Numbered from the stretch's first letter, positions 15,465-63,610 are shown. The stretch is DNA of 64,000 nt from Macrostomum lignano (GCA_002269645.1 NIVC01000087.1:620001-684000); one strand, 5' to 3'. Translations and numbers: made by a program. Notes: generated by a model from the sequence alone, not told the origin.

Positions 15465-16515
15465 ACAACAACAACAGAATACGCGTTAAGCGTCACAGGG
15501 CACGCCTCAAGGCCAGTTCGCGAATGAACGTCACGCCGCCGGCCGAATCCGGGGCGCCGGCGTCAGCCAGTAGGCAGTCGACGAAACGCCGAGTGCACGC
15601 CTGCCCCCGCCGGTAGCGTGCCTGCAGTGTCAGCAGCAGCACCTGCACCGGCTGAGAGCAGTACGACTCGGCGCGGATGATGTGGCCTGCCAGCTGGAGT
15701 CGCCAACAGGTTGCTTGGACAGACCAGGCCGGCGCGGTGATACAAAGCCGCGTTGGTCACTCGCTCGTAGCCGATCTTAAAGGCGGCGCGCAGCAGGCCA
15801 GCATGCACCCCGTCAACTTGTTGCTCGACGACTCGTCAGCGTCCAGGTCTCGGCGTTGTACAGCAGAACGGTCTCGATCACCGCCTAGAACAACGCCGCC
15901 CTCTGGCGGTCAGGTAACGCCTCGGACTGCAGGACTGCCCTCACAGAACGAAAGGCAGCCCAGGCAAGCCCGCGGCGACGCCGCAAATCCTCGTGAACGC
16001 CGGGAACCAGACCGCGGAGGTAGACGAACTGCTGACAACGCAGAAGTTTTGTCGCCTGTCCATCAGCGCCTCGGTACAAAATCGCAGCCTCGATGTCGTC
16101 CGGCACACAGAGCACGCCAGTCTTCTGCGTGTTAACCACCAGGCCGACACTCGCCGCAACAGCAACTAGCTTGTCCAGTTGTCGCTGGGCGCCCTCGACA
16201 GTTAAGGAGAGCAGGGCGAGATCGTCGGCGTAGCCAAGCACACTGAGTCGCCTCTCCGGTTGACGTCGACCCACGCGTCGCAGCAACAGAAAGCCGTCGT
16301 AGTTGGTAGGAAGAGCGGTCCGCAGCACCCAGTCAAGCACCAGAACGAACAGGAATGGCGCAAGCGTATCTCCCTGAAGCACCCCGGAGGATGTCTCAAC
16401 CGATAGGCCGTCCGGTGTTGAAAAAGCAGCTTTCGTATCACGGTACGTCGCCATGATGGCGAAATCAGCTGCTCTGGCACGTTGTACGCACGGAGCACCT
16501 TTGGGAGCGCAGACC
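15465..16515 (-). mobile_element. 5'-truncated, frameshifted non-LTR retrotransposon (RT domain; probably RTE-like)
   Basis: ORF 15885-16454 has GVLQGDTLAPFLFVLVLDW and YADD. The upstream VLRAYNVPEQLIS and downstream LLRAAFKIG segments are in other frames. Short (GTT)n tail at ~15465-15476. Confidence 0.88.
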
Positions 16516-16594: not shown

Positions 16595-17869
16595 TAGGGG
16601 TGTTCGGGGTTTGGGGTTAGGTCGGGGTTCGGGTCGGGATTAGGGGTCGGGGTTCGGGGTCCCGATGAATGTTCGGGATGGGGTTCAGGGTTCCCGATAA
16701 ATGTTCGGGATCGGGATTCGGGACGGGATTTTGGACCGGGATTTCGGGGTTTTCGGGGTTTCGCAAATTTTCTGCATTCCCATAGAACTACGAAAAAATC
16801 CTTATGAATTAGAATTAGCTTTTTTCGTTTTTAACGTGAGGTCATGTGGAGCCTTGAGCAGGAGCTTTCTGAGCAAGATGCCGCAGCTGCTGCCAGAAGC
16901 GCAAATACAATGGCCGCTACCGAGGAGATGCACGATAATGTCATTTTGGGTACTGAAGAGAGCTCTGGATGCAAGTTTTTGCAGTTCTGCAGATTATCTG
17001 GAATTACCACTCAGGAGTGCAATGCGACTGCGAGTGCATCGAACTCCGGCGCCAGAGGAGACGCGAGGAAGAAGGAAGCGAGGCGCAGAGCAGCTGATCA
17101 GCTTTCTCTGTACAGGAGTCTAGCGCAGCAGAATTTTCAGGTAGCAGTCAGCGAATTCTGGAAGCAGAACTCCGCTAATCTTCCAGAACTGGCAGAGCTC
17201 GCTAAGCTTCACCTCACTGCCCCAGCATCATCTGTCCCAACAGAGTGCGCCTTCAGTGCTGCCGGTTTTCTAAAGCGCAAGGAACGCTGCATCCTTTCCA
17301 GCTCATCGCTCAGCAAGTTAATGTTCTTGCGAGATAAATTCGATTAGCTGTATGCCATATTCGTTGAGCCAGAGACTGTAAAGTGACTCGCGTTCTATTC
17401 TATTATCACTTGGTAGTCTGATCATTCAGATTAGATGACATGAGAATTCAGATTATTTTAGTGTTTACTAGCGTCAACGTGCATCAATGGCAATGCCAAC
17501 AAAGACTAAGTAAACGAGATTAAGAAAAAGAGAGATTGATTCTTGATTGATAAGATAGCTTCCATCTCTGCAGAGAAAGAGGCACATGATGTTTCACACA
17601 TCAAAAGAAATGCAACCTGCCTAAAATTAATTTCACATTAACTTTAAGTTGAACTGAAACAGGCTAATAGTCGTAAGAAGCCGTCAATACCACTTTTATT
17701 TCATGCTATTGCTTACTTCGGGGTTATCGGGGTTCGGGGTCGGTATTAGGGTTCGGGACGGGGTTCGGGGTTCCCGATAAATGTTCGGGACGGGGTTCGG
17801 GATTCCCGAAAGATGTTCGGGATCGGGGTTAACCCGAACCCCGAAAAAATGCCATCCCGAACACCCCTA
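16595..17869 (+). mobile_element. Internally deleted hAT transposon retaining the C-terminal dimerization domain
   Basis: 14-bp TIR TAGGGGTGTTCGGG / CCCGAACACCCCTA; perfect 8-bp TSD CCTCCAAT (16587-94, 17870-77); GGGGTTC subterminal repeats. ORF 16844-17347 has FWKQN..LPELAELAKLHLTAPASSVPTECAFSAAG...R..L....L..LMFL (hATC). Confidence 0.92.
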
Positions 17870-24507: not shown

Positions 24508-26465
<1,958 letters not shown>

Positions 26466-27365: not shown

Positions 27366-27650
27366 GGGGTTGTAGACTAGTCGTTAGAGCGTCGGACTCA
27401 GTATTGAAAGGTCGGGGGTTCGATTCCCGATCCCACTGGAACAATTTGTATCCTTGAGTAAGTCACTTAACTCTGATTGTTTCAGTCACCCAGCTGTAAA
27501 ATGGGTTTAGCTGGGGTAATTGAAGTGTGTGTGGCACCCCCAGTCCTTGGACTGAACAGCCGTACGCAGCCTTCAGATGCGCCGCGCATAGCTGCGGCTG
27601 AGCTGTCGGTTGCACATCTGCCCATTAGGGCAGGTGCAATCGAAAAAAAT
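27366..27650 (+). mobile_element. tRNA-derived SINE with CORE-like central domain (copy 1)
   Basis: A-box-like TAGACTAGTCGTTAGAGC, B-box GGTTCGATTCC, CCTTGAGTAAGTCACTTAAC...CTGTAAAATGGG (resembles MIR/CORE), terminal hairpin TGCACATCTGCCC-ATTA-GGGCAGGTGCA, A-tail. Two more copies in the window. Confidence 0.85.
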
Positions 27651-27745
27651 ATGTACGGTCTGGTAAGGCAATTTAATGATGTCAGCACCGCCAAAATGGC
27701 TGATGCATCAGATGGTGTATTTTAGTTTTAGTCCAAATTAGACAA

Positions 27746-30700
27746 TCAGGGAAAATCAGCCCTAATGATGTCGATGATGCGGTTCATCAGATCGTCGAGC
27801 ATGTCGCTGAGCAGCTGCTTGTTGGCCTCCGCGATGCCCGTCAGGTTGTTGGCGATGAGCTGCATGATGGTGCGCACGTTCTCAACCAGATCGCGGCTGC
27901 CGATGCCAATCTGGATGAAGATCTCCACGATCTTGGCGATGGGTGCCGCCAGAACGTTGGCCAAGTGTCAACAGCGCGACGGATCAGGTCGGCGGCCTCG
28001 CCAACCTTGTTCTCGATGTCGGCGCGGAGCTTGTCCAGCACCTGGGCAGTGGCAGTGGTTGCAGGGAAATTTCACCATTCGATAGAAATTTTATTCCTAA
28101 ATGAACATTTTATCAGGTTTGAAAAGACCTGGTGCGCGAAGGCTGACAGTAGGCTCTTAGGAATAAACTAGCAAACAGAGCTCCCCGTTGGGCGCCAGCA
28201 AAGAATGGAATAATTTTTTTTTGAATAAACTGCATGTAGCTTCTGACCTTATCCTTGGCATTTCAGCAATTCCCCTCGTAAGCCTTGACATCTCAGCAAT
28301 TCCCCTCGTAAGCCTTGGCATCTCAGCAATTCCCCTCGTAAGCCTTGAAATTTCAGCAATCCCAACCCCCAGTGAGCCTTGACGTCTCAGCTTATACAAT
28401 AATAACTAAAAAAAAATACATTACGGAGATAGGAGGTGTTCATTTTTTCATAACAAATAGTGTATTCTTCTTTTGATACGTCTTGCCCTTCTTATAGCTC
28501 TATTGATATTGACAAAGGTTTTCGTTTAAAAAATAGGATTTTATGTTAATTTTATATCCTACGTATATTTCCTATGCCCAAAATCGATTTGTTTTATGAA
28601 TCTATTTTTTATCATTCTGTCACACAGTCATGAAGCTTTAAGAATGATAAAATAGATAGCTCAGGGGTCGGCAGCTCTTTTTTACTGGCCAATGATGGCC
28701 AATCTAGCGCATAACTGCGGACCAGGTGAAGGGAGAAGAGAGGGAAAGAGGAGGAGAGAGAGAGGAGAATAGAGGAGAGAAAAGAGAACAGGAGAGATGA
28801 GATATTGAGGTAAGAGAAAAGACACAAACATTGTGCTTTGGATTGCTGTTGTGAAGTTTCAAAGGACCAGAGGGCCGGATAGAGAGGCTTCGCGGGCCGT
28901 ATAGTTTGCCGACTCCTGCTCTAGCTGGTCAACCTTGCCTCTTATGCAGCAATGTACACTGTAATGTACAGTGAAATTCGTACAGACAAAAGGCTCCCTA
29001 CGCGGCTGGAAAAGCTTTTCATAGTCTATGGCCAGCTACACTGTCAACCACGCGGACAATGAATGGATTCGTATTTTCAGGCTTCGGAGTGACTAGTGAT
29101 AATACTAATCATAGTAATCACCTCATTAATGAAGGAAATGATGGGGCCGAGAATGCGGTTGATAATCTCCAGGAGGATGGAGAAATCCATAGCCTGACGG
29201 GCCGCGACCGCGTCGCCGTCGATGATGTCGAGTAGGCCAGAGATCACCAGGCTAAGAATGCTCTTAAAGATGGCTTTGTTGGCCTCGTGGATTCCGGAGA
29301 CGCTGTCTGTAAATTAATTGACGTTTTACATGTACTTAAAATTTTTTCAATGACCAGAGTTAATAATTGAGTTTTGAGACTCCTACCGATCAGGGTCTCA
29401 AGCGCCCTCTTGATAGCCTTGGCGAGGTCGCCAATCTCGATGCCGATGTCGTGAAGAACGCCGATAATCTTGACGACCGGATCGCGGAGCAGCAGCGTCA
29501 GCTCGTCGATGAGGCGCTGCAATTTGGCCTTGGCTTCGTCGGTTTTGTCCTCGATCAGCATGCGGATCTGGTCCAAGATCTGGATGGGGTAATCGAAAGC
29601 TTTTGAAATAGATTTGATGCTGGACAATGTGTGTCTCTTCTGTGTGTGAGGATTTCTCCCTCAGGTTGTGTCACAGTTAATTAATGGTAGCTTGTGTCAC
29701 AGGCTGTCTCCCTCAGGTTGTGTCAGTTAATTGAGTGGTAGCTTGTGTCACAGGTTGTCTCCCTCAGGTTGTGTCTCAGTCAATGAATGGTAGCTTGTGT
29801 CACAGGCTGTCTCCCTCAGGTTGTGTCACAGGCTGTCTCCCTCAGGTTGTGTCACAAGCTGTCTCCCTCAGGTTGTGTCACAGGCTGTCTCCCTCAGGTT
29901 GTGTCAGTTAATTGAGTGGTTGCTTGTGTCACAGGCTGTCTCCCTCAGGTTGTGTCACAGGCTGTCTCCCTCAGGTTGTGTCACAGGCTGTCTCCCTCAG
30001 GTTGTGTCACAGGCTATCTCCCTCAGCTTGTGTCACAGGCTGTCTCCCTCAGGTTGTGTCACAGTCAATGAATGGTAGCTTGTGTCACAGGCTGTCTCCC
30101 TCAGGTTGTGTCACAGTTAGTTAATGGTAGTTTGTGTCACAGGCTGTCTCCCTCAGGTTGTGTCACAGTTAGTTAATGGTAGCTTGTGTCACAGGCTGTC
30201 TCCCTCAGGTTGTGTCACAGTTTTCTGTGCCAGCTGATTTGTCAGGCTGGGTCACCGCCCCCTCCCTCAGTGCCAAGCACTCACCCCGTTGATCTTGCCC
30301 AGAATCGGCTGCACAATCCAGCCAATGATGCGGTCAATGATGAGGAAGGCCTCGTCGCGCTTGGGTGCCAGAAGGAAGCCTTTGCCAACGATGCCCGACA
30401 CCAGGATGTCCGTCACCTTTTCGATGAGGAGGGCCACAGTCTCCGCACTGATGGAGGCAATTGAGCCGATACCGCCTGAAATAATAAAGTACATGGTGTC
30501 ATTGAATCGGAAACTGTTACCAACTACAGTGCACCCCTCAGTCTGATAAATGATCTTACCAAGAACAGCAGCCACCAACTGTTTAATGGCGTCCCTCACG
30601 TTGACAACCTCGCCGAGGATATTGTTCATGATGTCTATGATGCGGATAGCGAACGGCCGGATGAGCTCGGCGATGGCGTCGGCGTAGTCCAGAATGTTGT

Positions 30701-32818
30701 CTCCGATGATGCCGACCTGATCAATCAGGGACAGGATGAGGGACTGCACCTGGCGCTTGGCAAGCTCCAGGAGCGGCTGGATGAGCTTGTCAAGAATGCC
30801 GCGAGCCTGCTTGGGCTGGGCCAGCAGCTGCTGGAACACCTCCAGCTCGGCGGCGGTTGGCAGCAGCTTGTCCACGATGTAGTTGATGAGAGACTTGATG
30901 ATCTCCTTGTTGGCGTCGCCGATAACGCCAACGTATTCTGTTGTGCAGGTGGCATTTTTGGAGTAAGATTTTGAGCATATAGAGTAAGACATTCATTTTG
31001 GAGCTTCACAGTAGCATGAGGCATATTTACTCAAATTTTTATTCTAAGATCATTTTTATGCATTCAACATAACGCATAATTGGTAGTTAGGCTATTTTTA
31101 GAAGGTAAACCAGTATTACTAAAAGTAAAATAAATTATAAAAGTTATCATTTATTGGTAACTTAAAATTCGAGATTAAAACAAAACAATTTTCGAGATTA
31201 GCAACTTTGTTTCTTGGAAAGCATAGTAATAAAAAGATGAAGATGATGAAGATGACTCCTGGAGGTGGGCAATCGTGCCTATTCCACTGGCCATTGAACA
31301 CGCACACTGATACGGATACGTACGCATGCACACACTCATACAGGTTGTACACTACAGCAACCATGACTTTTGTCACCGTCATTCCTGCACACTCTCTGTG
31401 CCTTGGAATTTGGCCCTCCTAGACACTTTTCACGGTGCCTGAACCCAAAATTGATGTCGCCACTCGCGCGGCTTCAAACCAAGGACTTTGGCGCGAGAGT
31501 CGGACGCGTTAAACACTGATTTGCTCAGCCCCACCCCCCCCCCCCCAGAAAACGGCTCCTCACCGAACAGAGCCTCAACGGCCATGCGGAAGCCCCCCCC
31601 CCCCAGCAAACGGCTCCTCACCGAACAGAGCCTCAACGGCCATGCGGCAGCCCCCCCCCAGCAAACGGCTCCTCACCGAACAGAGCCTCAACGGCCATGC
31701 GGCAGCCCCCCCCCAGCAAACGGCTCCTCACCGAACAGAGCCTCAACGGCCATGCGGCAGCCCCCCCCCAGCAAACGGCTCCTCACCGAACAGAGCCTCA
31801 ACGGCCATGCGGAAGCCCCCCCCCCCAGCAAACGGCTCCTCACCGAACAGAGCCTCAACGGCCATGCGGATTCGCTCGCGAAGCTCCACGCCGGCGCCGA
31901 TGATGTTGTTGATCTGGTCCAGAATCCTAATGACGAAGGGCCTGATCAGTTCGACAAGGGCGTCAATCATCTCCTTGACATTGCCGATGATGAGACCGCC
32001 CTGGTCCTTGATCGAGTTGATGATCGAGTTGATTTGCTGGAATAGTAAGAGAATGCAAATGGCATAGTAGTTGATTTTGGTAGTTATAAGGGATACAGAT
32101 AGCAGATGCAGACACAGGTAATTAAAAGTAAATCTGTTCAGCAATGTCTCACAGTCAGCACCAACTGTTTCAGCGGCCTCAGCAGGATGTCGATGATGCC
32201 ACTGATGAAGAAGCCAACTTCCTTCCGGTCAGCTTCTGTAGCACAGGATAGTAGTATAAAGCAGTATTACGAGTAATGTCAGACTATATCAGGCAGGGGT
32301 AAAGGGCGCCCACCAACAGACAGGGGTAAGGGGAAATTATCAAGAGACAGGGGTAAGGGGAAATTATCAAGAGACAGGGGTAAGGGGCAATTATCAAGAG
32401 ACAGGGGTAAGGGGCAATTATCAAGAGACAGGGGTAAGGGGCAATTATCAAGAGACAGGGGTAAGGGGCAATTATCAAGAGACAGGGGTAAGGGGCAATT
32501 ATCAAGAGACAGGGGTAAGGGGCGCCCATCAAGAGAGAGGGCTAAGGGGCGCCCATCAAGAGACAGGGCTAAGGGGCGTATATTGACGCCCCTTAGGGTT
32601 GCGGCCCCTTTAAATTAATTTCCTGAGCGTGCCACTAAGAGTGCAACTTGCTATGACATAAGGACAAACTACCAGTGTCCAGCGCACAGATGAAGCAGCT
32701 ACTCACTTCCAGCTTCCTCAACCTGCGACTTCCGTCGGATTTCGGCGGCTGACGCAGTCAGGGCGGCCAGCCCGACGACTCCAAGCAGCAGCACTACCAG
32801 CCAGGACGACAATCTCAT
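27746..32818 (-). CDS. Orphan secreted protein (~540 aa): signal peptide plus four ~125-aa amphipathic alpha-helical repeats, no Cys; 8 exons; 1-nt frameshift in last exon
   Basis: Exons 32818-32707 (MRLSSWLVVLLLGVVGLAALTASA..), 32235-32162, 32036-31844, 30937-30560, 30475-30285, 29579-29387, 29306-29122, 28041-27746. All are GT-AG with matching phases; exons 3 and 6 are both 193 nt. Internal repeat motif I..I.EANK. Confidence 0.8.
28250..28372. repeat. 30-bp tandem repeat x4 (CAGCAATTCCCCTCGTAAGCCTTGGCATTT)
   Basis: Direct reading; intronic. Confidence 0.85.
28662..28918. mobile_element. hAT-like MITE (TIR CAGGGGTCGGCA); related copies at ~36310-36431 and 51758-51931
   Basis: CAGGGGTCGGCA...TGCCGACTCCTG; shared internal TTGTGAAGTTTCAAAGGACC (reverse-complemented at ~51780-51800). 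TSD only partial. Confidence 0.65.
29650..30222. repeat. 26-bp minisatellite (TTGTGTCACAGGCTGTCTCCCTCAGG)n
   Basis: Direct reading; intronic. Confidence 0.92.
31535..31870. repeat. 55-58-bp tandem repeat, each unit containing the exon-3 end and 5' splice site of the secreted-protein gene
   Basis: Six copies of minus-strand CGCATGGCCGTTGAGGCTCTGTTCG|GTGAGGAGCC. Confidence 0.9.
32295..32577. repeat. 27-bp minisatellite (AAGAGACAGGGGTAAGGGGCAATTATC)n
   Basis: Direct reading; intron 1 of the secreted-protein gene. Confidence 0.9.
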
Positions 32819-33377
32819 TATTGTTGCAGAAATTCTTTCCGAAAAAGAAAATGAAATCTCAGACCAGCAAGCGGCTAACCAGTTCCCGCTGACGGAATTT
32901 ATTTAGTATTATTAGGACGAAATCACCTGTTGAACAGTCGCCCTTCCCTCTCTCGCACAGGCCATTCTGCAGCTCCACTGCGTGCCTCAGCCAGCGAAAT
33001 CTGGCCGAGCAGCTGCTGAGCTCCCAGTGATAACAGCAGCTCAAAGGTCGTTTTCAATACAAAGAAAAGGCATGCGCGAAGCCCCAATAGGGAGTTTTAT
33101 CGGAGACACGATGCACCGAAACACTGCCTGCTAGGGTAATTCCAACTTTGCGCAACGTGTGTGAGAATTTTGAAAAAAGGCGCATGGCACCACACAATGA
33201 ACTATTTCTTAGGCATAGTAGGTTAAGGTAAGAAAGAATTGAAGCAAATGAATATTGTCTGTGTATTTTGAACTGAAGTTGAAATAAGCATGGACAAAGC
33301 TGATGGTTATTTCCTGCTTTATTTCGTTTTACATGTGCTTAGAATAAATTTACTCCTAGATGTCTATAGTCCAACAG

Positions 33378-35312
33378 ACTGAAGATACACCAGACACACT
33401 GAAGATACACCAGACACACTGAAGATACACCAGACACACTGAAGATACACCAGACACACTGAAGATACACCAGACACACTGAAGATACGCCAGAAACACG
33501 GAAGATACACCAGACACACTGGAGATACACCAGACACACTGGAGATACACCAGACACACTGGAGATACACCAGACACACTTGAGATACACCAGACACACT
33601 GGAGATACACCAGAAACACTGAAGATACACCAGACACACGGAAGATACACCAGAAACACTGAAGATACACCAGACACACTGAAGATACACCAGACACACT
33701 GGAGGTACACCAGAAACACTGAAGATACACCAGACACACTTGAGATACACCAGAAACACTGGAGATACACCAGACACACTGAAGATACACCAGAAACACT
33801 GAAGATACACCAGACACACTTGAGATACACCAGACACACTGGAGATACACCAGACACACTGGAGATACACCAGACACACTGGAGATACACCAGACACACT
33901 GGAGATACACCAGAAACACTGAAGATACACCAGAAACACTGAAGATACACCAGACACACTGGAGATACACCAGACACACTTGAGATACACCAGAAACACT
34001 GAAGATACACCAGAAACACTGAAGATACACCAGAAACACTGAAGATACACCAGAAACACTGAAGATACACCAGACACACTGGAGATACACCAGACACACT
34101 GAAGATACACCAGACACACTTGAGATACACCAGACACACTGGAGATACACCAGAAACACTGAAGATACACCAGACACACGGAAGATACACCAAGACAGAC
34201 TCAGACACACTGGAGATACACCAGACACACTTGAGATACACAAGACACACTGAAGATACACCAGACACACTGAAGATACGCCAGAAACACGGAAGATACA
34301 CCAGACACACTGGAGATACACCAGACACACTGGAGATACACCAGACACACTGGAGATACACCAGACACACTTGAGATACACCAGACACACTGGAGATACA
34401 CCAGAAACACTGAAGATACACCAGACACACGGAAGATACACCAAGACAGACTCAGACACACTGGAGATACACCAGACACACTTGAGATACACCAGACACA
34501 CTTGAGATACACAAGACACACTTGAGATACACCAGAAACACTGAAGATACACCAGACACACTGAAGATACGCCAGACACACGGAACATACACCAGACACA
34601 CTGGAGATACACCAGACACACTGGAGATACACCAGAAACACTGGAGATACACCAGAAACACTGAAGATACACCAGACACACTGGAGATACACCAGACACA
34701 CTGGAGATACACCAGACACACTGGAGATACACCAGACACACTGGAGATACACCAGAAACACTGGAGATACACCAGAAACACTGAAGATACACCAGACACA
34801 CTGGAGATACACCAGACACACTGAAGATACACCAGACACACTGGAGATACACCAGACACACTGAAGATACACCAGACACACTGGAGATACACCAGACACA
34901 CTGAAGATACACCAGACACACTGGAGATACGCCAGAAACACGGAAGATACACCAGACACACTGGAGATACACCAGACACACTGGAGATACACCAGACACA
35001 CTGGAGATACACCAGACACACTGGAGATACACCAGAAACACTGAAGATACACCAGAAACACTGAAGATACACCAGAAACACTGAAGATACACCAGACACA
35101 CTTGAGATACACCAGACACACTGGAGATACACCAGACACACTTGAGATACACCAGACACACTGGAGATACACCAGACACACTGAAGATACACTAGACACA
35201 CTGAAGATACACCAGACACACTGAAGATACACCAGACACACTGAAGATACACCAGACACACTGAAGATACACCAGACACACTGAAGATACACCAGACAGA
35301 CTGAAGATACAC
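33378..35312. repeat. 20-bp minisatellite (GAAGATACACCAGACACACT)n, ~1.9 kb, intergenic
   Basis: Direct reading; source of the long (CLVYLQCVWCISSVSGVSSV)n ORFs. Confidence 0.97.
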
Positions 35313-36707
35313 CGAAAAGCATACTAGAAACGCAGCAAGCGGCCTCAAGACACATACAATACCGAAGCAACAATGTACCTCAACCATTGGCCCAATATTT
35401 ATGAGCACGAGGCCTCAGTATAATTTCTTATTAGAATTTATTAAATGATGAAAAGCCGAGGAAAAAGATGAGTATTAAATTATTTGATAAGTTATTGCAC
35501 TAATATAATCAGCATTTGTTATATGCATCTTATCCAATCAAGCAAATACAGCGGCTCATGACACGCAATCCGAATAAAATTCTCATACTTTTTTCACAGG
35601 AAAAAGCAGAACAAACCAAAAAACCAGAGAGTCAGCAAATGAATTTTAGTCACGAAGCTGATATGGAGAGCGGAGATGCTGTGTACAATAATTCGAAACT
35701 TTTTTTATTATAATGAGTAGACAGACAGTTAGGAAAGGCGGCCGGATATGGGAATAGCGACACCCCAACCCAGTAACCCTTGGGCTTAAGAGACAGTGGA
35801 GTGTGTTAATCAAACCCACACCAGCAAATTGCATCGCAAGCAAAGAGATGATTGGTGAATACGGTAAGAAAAGTAATTTATAAGTACATTAATCCAATTA
35901 AATTGAAGCGAGTAAAAAAAGCAGTTATTTTTAGGCTCACGGACATGCGTTTATCATGATAGAATTATGTACACAAACCAAAATCGGAAACACAACCCAC
36001 TGATTAAACATTCTAGCAATGAAAAGTTAGGCAACAGCAGACGCTCTTTAAAAAATAAACCTTTATTCATTAATTAGCAAAGCTATTGATATACGCAGGA
36101 CAATATTGATGGGAAGCAAAATGGGTGAAAATTGGATTTATTGTCATAGTAATACTTACTCTCTCACGCGAGAGGCTTTTGCACACGTTTCTTACAAGTG
36201 AACTATTAATATTATGCAATTTTCTACTGGACAACTTGGCTATTTGGCATCGCAGCTCACTGGGTAAGCCGTGTTGCATAAAAATTACGCGCTCCTAAGT
36301 TCTATTCAAGGGCCAGATGAAAAAAAGGAGAGGGACAGAGAAGCGAGCTGAGCAGAGTCACAAACCTTGATCGGGCCGGATTGCTATTGTGAAGCTTCAA
36401 AGGACCCGAGTGCCGGATTTTGCAACCCCCTAAAAGTGTAAAAGGAAGGACGTAAATCTCAAAAACATTCCTAAGTTTACTTTGCCCTGCAGTGTTTCAC
36501 TAAATTGTCTAATTTCTTATTGATTCTGGTCTATACCAGAAGTATTTTCCGTAAATTCAACTGCTTAGAAGTCTTAGATGCTTACTGAGACAAGAAGATG
36601 CGAAAATTGACCAATTATTGTGCTAGAACAAGACTTCGAAAGCAGGATTTGGGAGTGCCTGGTGAGGAGCCTCCTTTATTAATCAGCTGCCCACGATAGC
36701 CAAGCAA

Positions 36708-63610
<26,903 letters not shown>

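Follow-up and report, generated by a model that had tools for sequence, protein, structure and literature searches.

In the nematode polyprotein allergens (ABA-1/NPA), a signal peptide precedes a tandem array of helical units, each ~125–130 residues long, that arose by duplication. Other secreted helical proteins are the exchangeable apolipoproteins (apolipophorin-III of insects and ApoA-I/A-IV/E of vertebrates), which are poor in Cys, consist of amphipathic helices only and form bundles of long helices, as well as the cestode hydrophobic-ligand-binding proteins (HLBPs) and the nematode FAR proteins, which are small, helix-rich lipid carriers of helminths. Here, we analyzed a gene of the flatworm Macrostomum lignano that recalls each of these systems. 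It lies at positions 27746–32818 on the minus strand of a 64,000-nucleotide stretch of the genome assembly (GCA_002269645.1, NIVC01000087.1:620001–684000), which we refer to as the window and from whose first letter all positions are counted. An earlier note on this DNA had described the gene product as an orphan secreted protein of four amphipathic helical repeats and as a candidate processed polyprotein with lipid-binding or membrane-active units. In our analysis, it is highly probable that this is a genuine coding gene, transcribed and maintained by purifying selection, which to date has been observed in Macrostomum only, and that its product comprises a signal peptide and, downstream of it, four tandem, all-helical modules of ~125 residues that originated by serial duplication.

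Results

Gene structure and near-identical copies in M. lignano

The minus strand of positions 27600–32900 was read in three frames, after which the splice junctions were checked. This yielded eight exons and seven introns, all seven with GT-AG borders, and reproduced the number of exons as well as the outer limits that the earlier note had proposed. The exons are listed below, with the intron positions given as columns of the repeat units described further on.

32707..32818, minus strand: exon 1, carrying the start codon and encoding the signal peptide (MRLSSWLVVLLLGVVGLAALTASA|AE) and, after it, an acidic/basic N-terminal stretch of low conservation
32153..32235, minus strand: exon 2, beginning of unit 1 (FFISGIIDILLRPLKQLVLT); ends at unit column 22, phase 0
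31844..32036, minus strand: exon 3 (193 nt), core of unit 1, containing TQINSIINSIKDQGGLIIGNVK; ends at unit column 86, phase 1
30560..30937, minus strand: exon 4 (378 nt), completes unit 1 and covers most of unit 2; intron 4 follows at column 86, phase 1
30285..30475, minus strand: exon 5, completes unit 2 and opens unit 3; intron 5 follows at column 22, phase 0
29387..29579, minus strand: exon 6 (193 nt), central part of unit 3; intron 6 follows at column 86, phase 1
29122..29306, minus strand: exon 7, completes unit 3 and opens unit 4; intron 7 follows at column 22, phase 0
27746..28041, minus strand: exon 8 (296 nt, against 297 nt in both intact copies), remainder of unit 4 and the in-frame stop codon of the intact protein
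27962..27963, minus strand: frameshift site, two bases in place of codon 472

The exons of the window copy add up to 1631 nt (3n+2). Its translation remains in frame up to ...RRAVDT (residue 471) and continues with 40 out-of-frame residues, two of them Cys, before reaching a stop codon, giving 511 aa in total. The C-terminus that would be expected, ANVLAAPIAKIV...IIRADFP*, is found in a different frame. The sequence '...RRAVDTL' and the C-terminal 71 residues that had been quoted previously depend on one base that is absent from the window and can therefore not be read from it. For the same reason, the proposed length of ~540 aa and the claimed absence of cysteine apply to the intact protein, which measures 543 aa in copies elsewhere in the genome, but not to the window copy. 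The one-base gap sits in a short pyrimidine run. It may stem from an error in the consensus of the long-read assembly, or else the copy has been disabled by a very young mutation.

Over its 471 in-frame residues, the window translation matched the GenBank entry PAA91444.1 ('hypothetical protein BOX15_Mlig018020g3', Macrostomum lignano) at 100%, which bears out the flatworm origin guessed in the earlier note. This entry (Mlig018020.g3) has 511 aa including the frameshifted tail and thus represents the same model as the window gene. Its 90% cluster also contains a 543-aa protein, P0004 (Mlig018020 g1 and g2; UniRef100_A0A1I8HRI9, named 'Phage-related protein' in UniRef), which is identical to the window translation on either side of the frameshift. 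The two intact genes are located on other scaffolds of GCA_002269645.1, bringing the total to three near-identical copies, and the rest of the 64-kb window holds no further copy or paralogue of the gene. Exons 1–7 of both intact copies are nucleotide-identical to those of the window. Between the two intact copies, there is a synonymous difference in codon 471, which adjoins the frameshift site. In the long-read assembly of M. lignano, 180 Mb of duplicated blocks at ≥95% identity have been reported, and gene names with the same prefix denote transcripts clustered at 95% (PMC5730564).

Transcribed relatives and selective constraint

Two further proteins, P0002 (547 aa, 76% identity) and P0003 (546 aa, 64% identity), were found in assemblies of sequencing runs from other samples. 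Both are encoded on 1.7–1.8-kb contigs as uninterrupted 1.64-kb open reading frames (ORFs), and because the contigs are short and their ORFs uninterrupted, we consider them to be transcripts. When these contigs were compared with the window using BLASTN, the high-scoring segment pairs ended at exon ends and were contiguous within the transcript, and all junctions are therefore supported. The RNA support for the junctions on which the earlier note had made its reading depend is thus provided by these colinear transcripts together with the RNA-seq-guided GenBank annotation, which derives from a genome-guided RNA-seq assembly (PMC5730564). Given that the annotated M. lignano proteome contains one cluster only, we assumed that P0002 and P0003 come from other Macrostomum species.

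The Nei-Gojobori dN/dS ratios were 0.17 for the window against L001 and 0.33 for the window against L003, at a dS of ~0.9. Unit 3 was the most constrained part of the protein, with ratios of 0.07–0.17, and invariant blocks reached a length of 22 residues, as in TQINSIINSIKDQGGLIIGNVK (unit 1, encoded by exon 3), which is the same in all three proteins.

Signal peptide, composition and helix chemistry

The N-terminus consists of MRLSS, a 17-residue hydrophobic core and TASA|AE, with an uncharged hydrophobic run at residues 3–25 (read by eye). No other uncharged hydrophobic segment of the protein is as long as a signal peptide, and P0002 and P0003 have equivalent N-termini. Judged by eye, the n-, h- and c-regions, the small residues at −3/−1 and the conservation in the relatives are in agreement with the signal peptide claimed before. 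A single glycosylation sequon of the M. lignano protein is not conserved, as NLT is replaced by NLA in P0002.

The intact protein is rich in Ile (16.8%) and Leu (13.8%), has little Tyr (0.6%) and lacks Cys. Its mature chain of ~57 kDa has an isoelectric point (pI) of 5.0–6.6, a grand average of hydropathy (GRAVY) of +0.46 to +0.51 (overall +0.48) and an aliphatic index of ~145–149. The predicted helices are each ~45–65% hydrophobic (about 50%) and carry a net charge of −2 to +1. They are amphipathic: hydrophobic residues lie on average 51 degrees off the moment axis, compared with 126–138 degrees for charged ones, and hydrophobicity recurs with a significant period of 3.8 residues. This clustering of hydrophobic residues on one face, combined with the helical model of a unit described below, bears out the amphipathic helical units that had been suggested. 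Internal 19-residue windows reach Kyte-Doolittle values of up to 1.6–1.8. As no uncharged run beyond the signal peptide exceeds 18 residues, the protein has no classical transmembrane segment.

Four repeat units and their duplication history

The intact protein contains four units of ~125 aa each, which span residues 46–175 (unit 1), 176–298 (unit 2), 299–424 (unit 3) and 425–543 (unit 4). In Smith-Waterman comparisons against shuffled sequences, units 1 and 2 as well as units 3 and 4 aligned with a z-score of 25, units 1 and 3 with 12.7, and all other pairs with ~5. The 12 units of the three proteins could be aligned almost without gaps, which revealed two conserved Pro residues, one at unit column 13 that is invariant and the other near column 53. 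These significant scores and the near gap-free alignment agree with the four ~125-aa units described in the earlier note.

The introns recur at two homologous positions: units 1, 3 and 4 carry introns 2, 5 and 7, respectively, at unit column 22 (phase 0), and units 1, 2 and 3 carry introns 3, 4 and 6, respectively, at unit column 86 (phase 1). Since both positions and phases recur among the units, the ancestral unit carried two introns. The proposed tandem duplication, to which the equal length of exons 3 and 6 (193 nt each) had pointed, is thus sustained by two homologous positions with matching phases. The similarity pattern of the units implies an order of events, in which one ancestral unit doubled and each daughter then doubled again, giving the pairs (u1,u2) and (u3,u4). 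Unit 2 later lost its column-22 intron and unit 4 its column-86 intron, with both the duplications and the intron losses predating the split of the three lineages.

Predicted fold of a unit and search for known families

An AlphaFold model of unit 1, for which the 11 aligned units served as the alignment, had a predicted local distance difference test (pLDDT) score of 77.9 and a predicted template modeling score (pTM) of 0.73, with helices at positions 2–31, 38–65, 72–87, 92–109 and 113–124. According to this prediction, a unit would bundle about three long helices of ~30 residues in antiparallel orientation, the third of which is broken, plus a short connector. The model of the full-length protein, based on the three sequences, was wholly helical and unreliable (pLDDT 43.5). 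A Foldseek search of the unit model against the PDB and BFVD gave no match with E < 1 (best E = 1–1.5, TM ≤ 0.39), a result that carries little weight for all-helical models.

Sequence searches gave a similar picture. Pfam yielded nothing above its cut-off; the best match was to Baculo_PEP_C (E = 0.007), and five unrelated sub-threshold matches were present at E ≤ 1. A HMMER profile of the three proteins, when searched against 1.84 billion representatives, retrieved its own cluster and two marginal matches at E ~6e-4 only, namely a phage tape-measure protein with a PhageMin_Tail domain and a long viral-type helical protein. Sequence searches of the PDB gave nothing significant, and the top match of the unit profile, ApoA-IV at E = 0.012, had no qualifying stretch. 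The unit profile was also run against a word-indexed database of 5.8 billion proteins, which returned zero matches, not even the family itself; this search was uninformative and was not used. Across Pfam, the PDB sequence searches, the search of 1.84 billion proteins and Foldseek, no family was recovered, in line with the claimed orphan status, nor was there a full-length match to a characterized family, which the earlier note had named as the result that would speak against it.

Minisatellites and surroundings of the gene

The window is rich in minisatellites, as reported for the M. lignano genome (PMC5730564). Those in and near the gene are as follows.

31538..31869, minus strand: 55-nt minisatellite, 5.9 copies with 97% matches, in intron 3 and beginning inside exon 3
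32314..32577, no strand assigned: 27-nt minisatellite, 9.8 copies, in intron 1
29655..30220, no strand assigned: 26/52-nt minisatellite, filling intron 5
33374–35313: 20-nt minisatellite, 98 copies, ~560 nt upstream of the start codon

Intron 1 measures 471 nt in the window compared with 1308 and 4570 nt in the other two copies, and intron 5 measures 705 nt compared with 808 and 860 nt. These differences among the three copies are attributed to minisatellite expansion. The first copy of the 55-nt minisatellite is made up of the final 26 nt of exon 3 together with the donor site, and because the array repeats this exon end together with GT, intron 3 holds about five decoy donors. Splicing at such a donor would lengthen the message by 55 nt for each repeat and cause a frameshift. 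The 20-nt array produces overlapping spurious ORFs of 270–607 aa in several frames, and the same array lies upstream of the L004 copy.

Neighboring features include the following; none of them suggests a functional link to the gene.

24870–25358, plus strand: LicD-family segment (E = 1.5e-14)
16844–17347, plus strand: hAT dimerisation domain, a transposase remnant (E = 3.5e-11)
15885–16454, minus strand: reverse-transcriptase fragment (E = 4e-10)
44809–45951, minus strand: ORF with a PDZ domain (E = 1.3e-11)

The last of these ORFs extends into a minisatellite with a 12-nt unit, which is translated as (LSVLVSV)n. Neither a tRNA (ARAGORN) nor an Rfam feature was detected in the window. A motif resembling a tRNA T-arm (GGTTCGATTCC...) occurs at 27414–27439 on the plus strand and at 37567–37592 on the minus strand, and these two copies are probably fragments of a tRNA-derived short interspersed nuclear element (SINE).

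Discussion

From the composition of the protein, we tentatively propose that it is secreted as an uncut chain of four modules and that it may bind lipid or another hydrophobic ligand in the manner of an exchangeable apolipoprotein, while being unrelated to one. In such a scheme, the ~57-kDa chain would be secreted or stored uncut, and the helices of each module, ~50% aliphatic with narrow, charge-balanced polar faces, would bury their non-polar faces within and between modules. Such burial appears necessary because the chain has a GRAVY of +0.48 and no transmembrane segment. The bundles would then open to take up lipid or some other hydrophobic ligand. This explanation in its entirety, mechanism included, strikes us as plausible, although we would place it somewhat short of evenly balanced.

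Several observations weigh against this proposal. The hydrophobicity of the protein (GRAVY +0.48, aliphatic index ~149) is compatible with lipid binding or membrane activity, but lipid binding is deduced entirely from composition, and the known exchangeable apolipoproteins are hydrophilic overall, unlike the Macrostomum protein. Lys and Arg lie at 126 degrees from the hydrophobic centre and Asp and Glu at 138 degrees (Mann-Whitney p = 0.055); as the basic residues are only weakly closer to the non-polar face than the acidic ones, a class-A apolipoprotein signature is not established. The long invariant blocks suggest specific protein contacts rather than generic binding to lipid surfaces. The full-length model (pLDDT 43.5) is too poor to place the packing of the modules, and with only three known lineages, the arguments from conservation are thin. 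Lastly, a search of M. lignano papers and of supplementary data provided no expression or proteomic information for Mlig018020.

Instead of carrying a ligand, the modules could pack into a structural or self-assembling secretory material, such as a granule matrix, mucus, eggshell or adhesive-related material, an alternative that we consider unlikely but worth serious attention. The hydrophobic surface exceeds the burial capacity of a ~125-residue bundle, which favors packing between modules or between molecules, and the protein combines a signal peptide with an absence of Cys and of any conserved glycosylation sequon. Lineage-restricted secreted proteins are, moreover, typical of flatworm gland products. 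The chain nevertheless offers no low-complexity or cross-linking chemistry, given that Tyr amounts to 0.6% and that neither Cys nor Gly/Pro-rich stretches are present, and its conserved, non-repetitive blocks and the dN/dS of down to 0.07 in unit 3 would be unusual for a bulk structural secretion. The gene was also not found in the available, possibly incomplete supplements of a paper on gonad- and tail-region-specific transcripts, which is a weak point against such a role.

It is more doubtful still, indeed quite improbable, that the protein is membrane-active and serves defense or digestion, with soluble bundles that unfold onto membranes and permeabilize them like an α-helical pore former. 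Its amphipathic helices are very hydrophobic, with 19-residue windows at Kyte-Doolittle values of 1.6–1.8, and their pattern is similar to that of the hydrophobic helical regions of phage tape-measure proteins. Yet the protein is acidic to near neutral with near-neutral helices, unlike the typically cationic helices of lytic proteins, and its longest uncharged run of 18 residues falls short of the uncharged hairpin of 30–40 residues found in pore formers of the colicin, Bcl-2 and ClyA types. Neither Pfam nor Foldseek linked it to pore-former families (colicin/Bcl-2-like or ClyA/Hbl-like).

As a candidate reading, and by analogy with the nematode polyprotein allergens, the earlier note had put forward a polyprotein processed at basic residues, which would release four carriers of ~14 kDa, short lytic peptides or both. 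The tandem units are indeed similar in size to those of the nematode polyproteins, and in M. lignano basic residues do occur near three unit junctions (KQAR, APKR and AAR). These motifs are not maintained in the two relatives, even though the helices that flank them are conserved in both: KQAR is replaced by SPLLLGG and PFMLAK, APKR by APNQ and AASQ, DRK by NRRN and ETR, and AAR by AARS and AAV. Basic residues near unit boundaries are present in M. lignano, but 0/4 motifs are kept in proteins of 76% and 64% identity, a pattern that speaks against a processed polyprotein. Even in M. lignano, only the KR of APKR forms a classical dibasic pair, and Pfam at E ≤ 1 gave no nematode polyprotein family. 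As for lytic peptides, the segment that had been cited as an example (GILDKLIQPLLELAKR) is the first helix of a unit and, in the model of unit 1, the first helix of the bundle. Lytic helices are typically cationic, whereas the helices of this protein are near neutral and the protein as a whole is acidic to near neutral. Taken together, the unconserved basic sites, the acidic protein and the near-neutral helices leave the idea of a processed polyprotein or of lytic peptides unsupported, and we regard it as very unlikely.

The 'Phage-related protein' label in UniRef is probably a compositional artefact. In the PHROGs database, tape-measure families matched the intact protein down to E = 2.4e-15, and the reversed sequence, used as a control because it can have no true homologues, matched identical families at E = 1.4e-12. 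A shuffle that kept the hydrophobic/polar pattern and the positions of Gly and Pro still reached E = 1.5e-8, while global shuffles gave no match. Because both the reversed and the pattern-kept controls match, the similarity reflects periodic composition and not ancestry. Phage tape-measure proteins do share with this protein long runs of aliphatic, amphipathic helices broken by Gly. Horizontal transfer from a phage tail tape-measure gene, which the PHROGs matches and the two marginal profile matches (a tape-measure protein and a viral-type helical protein) would favor, is nonetheless extremely improbable, as the reversed-sequence and pattern-preserving controls speak against it, the protein has no PhageMin_Tail or TMP Pfam domain, and the gene is eukaryotic, with a signal peptide, seven spliceosomal introns and copies on three flatworm scaffolds.

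At present, the gene is one of many that encode lineage-restricted 'hypothetical proteins' in M. lignano, and as such of modest interest. What has been gained is a corrected reading of the locus, the recognition that its phage label is most likely an artefact, and the removal of the polyprotein and lytic-peptide idea. The composition of the protein, with 17% Ile and a GRAVY of +0.48 in a secreted chain that lacks a transmembrane segment, would be of interest to protein biophysics and design. If the lipid-carrier proposal were true, secreted helical carriers of lipid would have been invented independently in the lineage of a flatworm model that is tractable by transgenesis, and the gene could inform how flatworms move dietary lipid.

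The comparison with described systems puts these possibilities in perspective. Compared with the nematode polyprotein allergens, the Macrostomum protein does not have conserved multi-basic (furin-type) sites between its units, shows no match to the family in Pfam at E ≤ 1 or in the search of 1.84 billion proteins, and has four units only, each of which is orthologously conserved instead of homogenized. It also differs from the exchangeable apolipoproteins, as neither PF07464 nor PF01442 was matched in Pfam at E ≤ 1, and it is far more hydrophobic, being rich in Ile and not in Leu/Ala/Gln/Glu. The 11/22-residue repeat punctuated by Pro that characterizes apolipoproteins is absent, with a period of 3.8 residues and units of ~125 aa found in its place. 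The cestode HLBPs and nematode FAR proteins, to which no sequence relation was seen in the search of 1.84 billion proteins or in Pfam, are single-domain proteins of 8–20 kDa, in contrast to the four-module chain of Macrostomum. A similar need for carriers is possible if free-living flatworms also depend on dietary lipid. It is conceivable, though on balance doubtful, that Macrostomum, a free-living flatworm, possesses a new genus-restricted family, possibly with a new helical-bundle arrangement, whose unusually Ile-rich, net-hydrophobic chain serves outside the cell to carry or solubilize, like a surfactant, lipids or further hydrophobic molecules and has converged with the apolipophorins and with the carriers of nematodes and cestodes.

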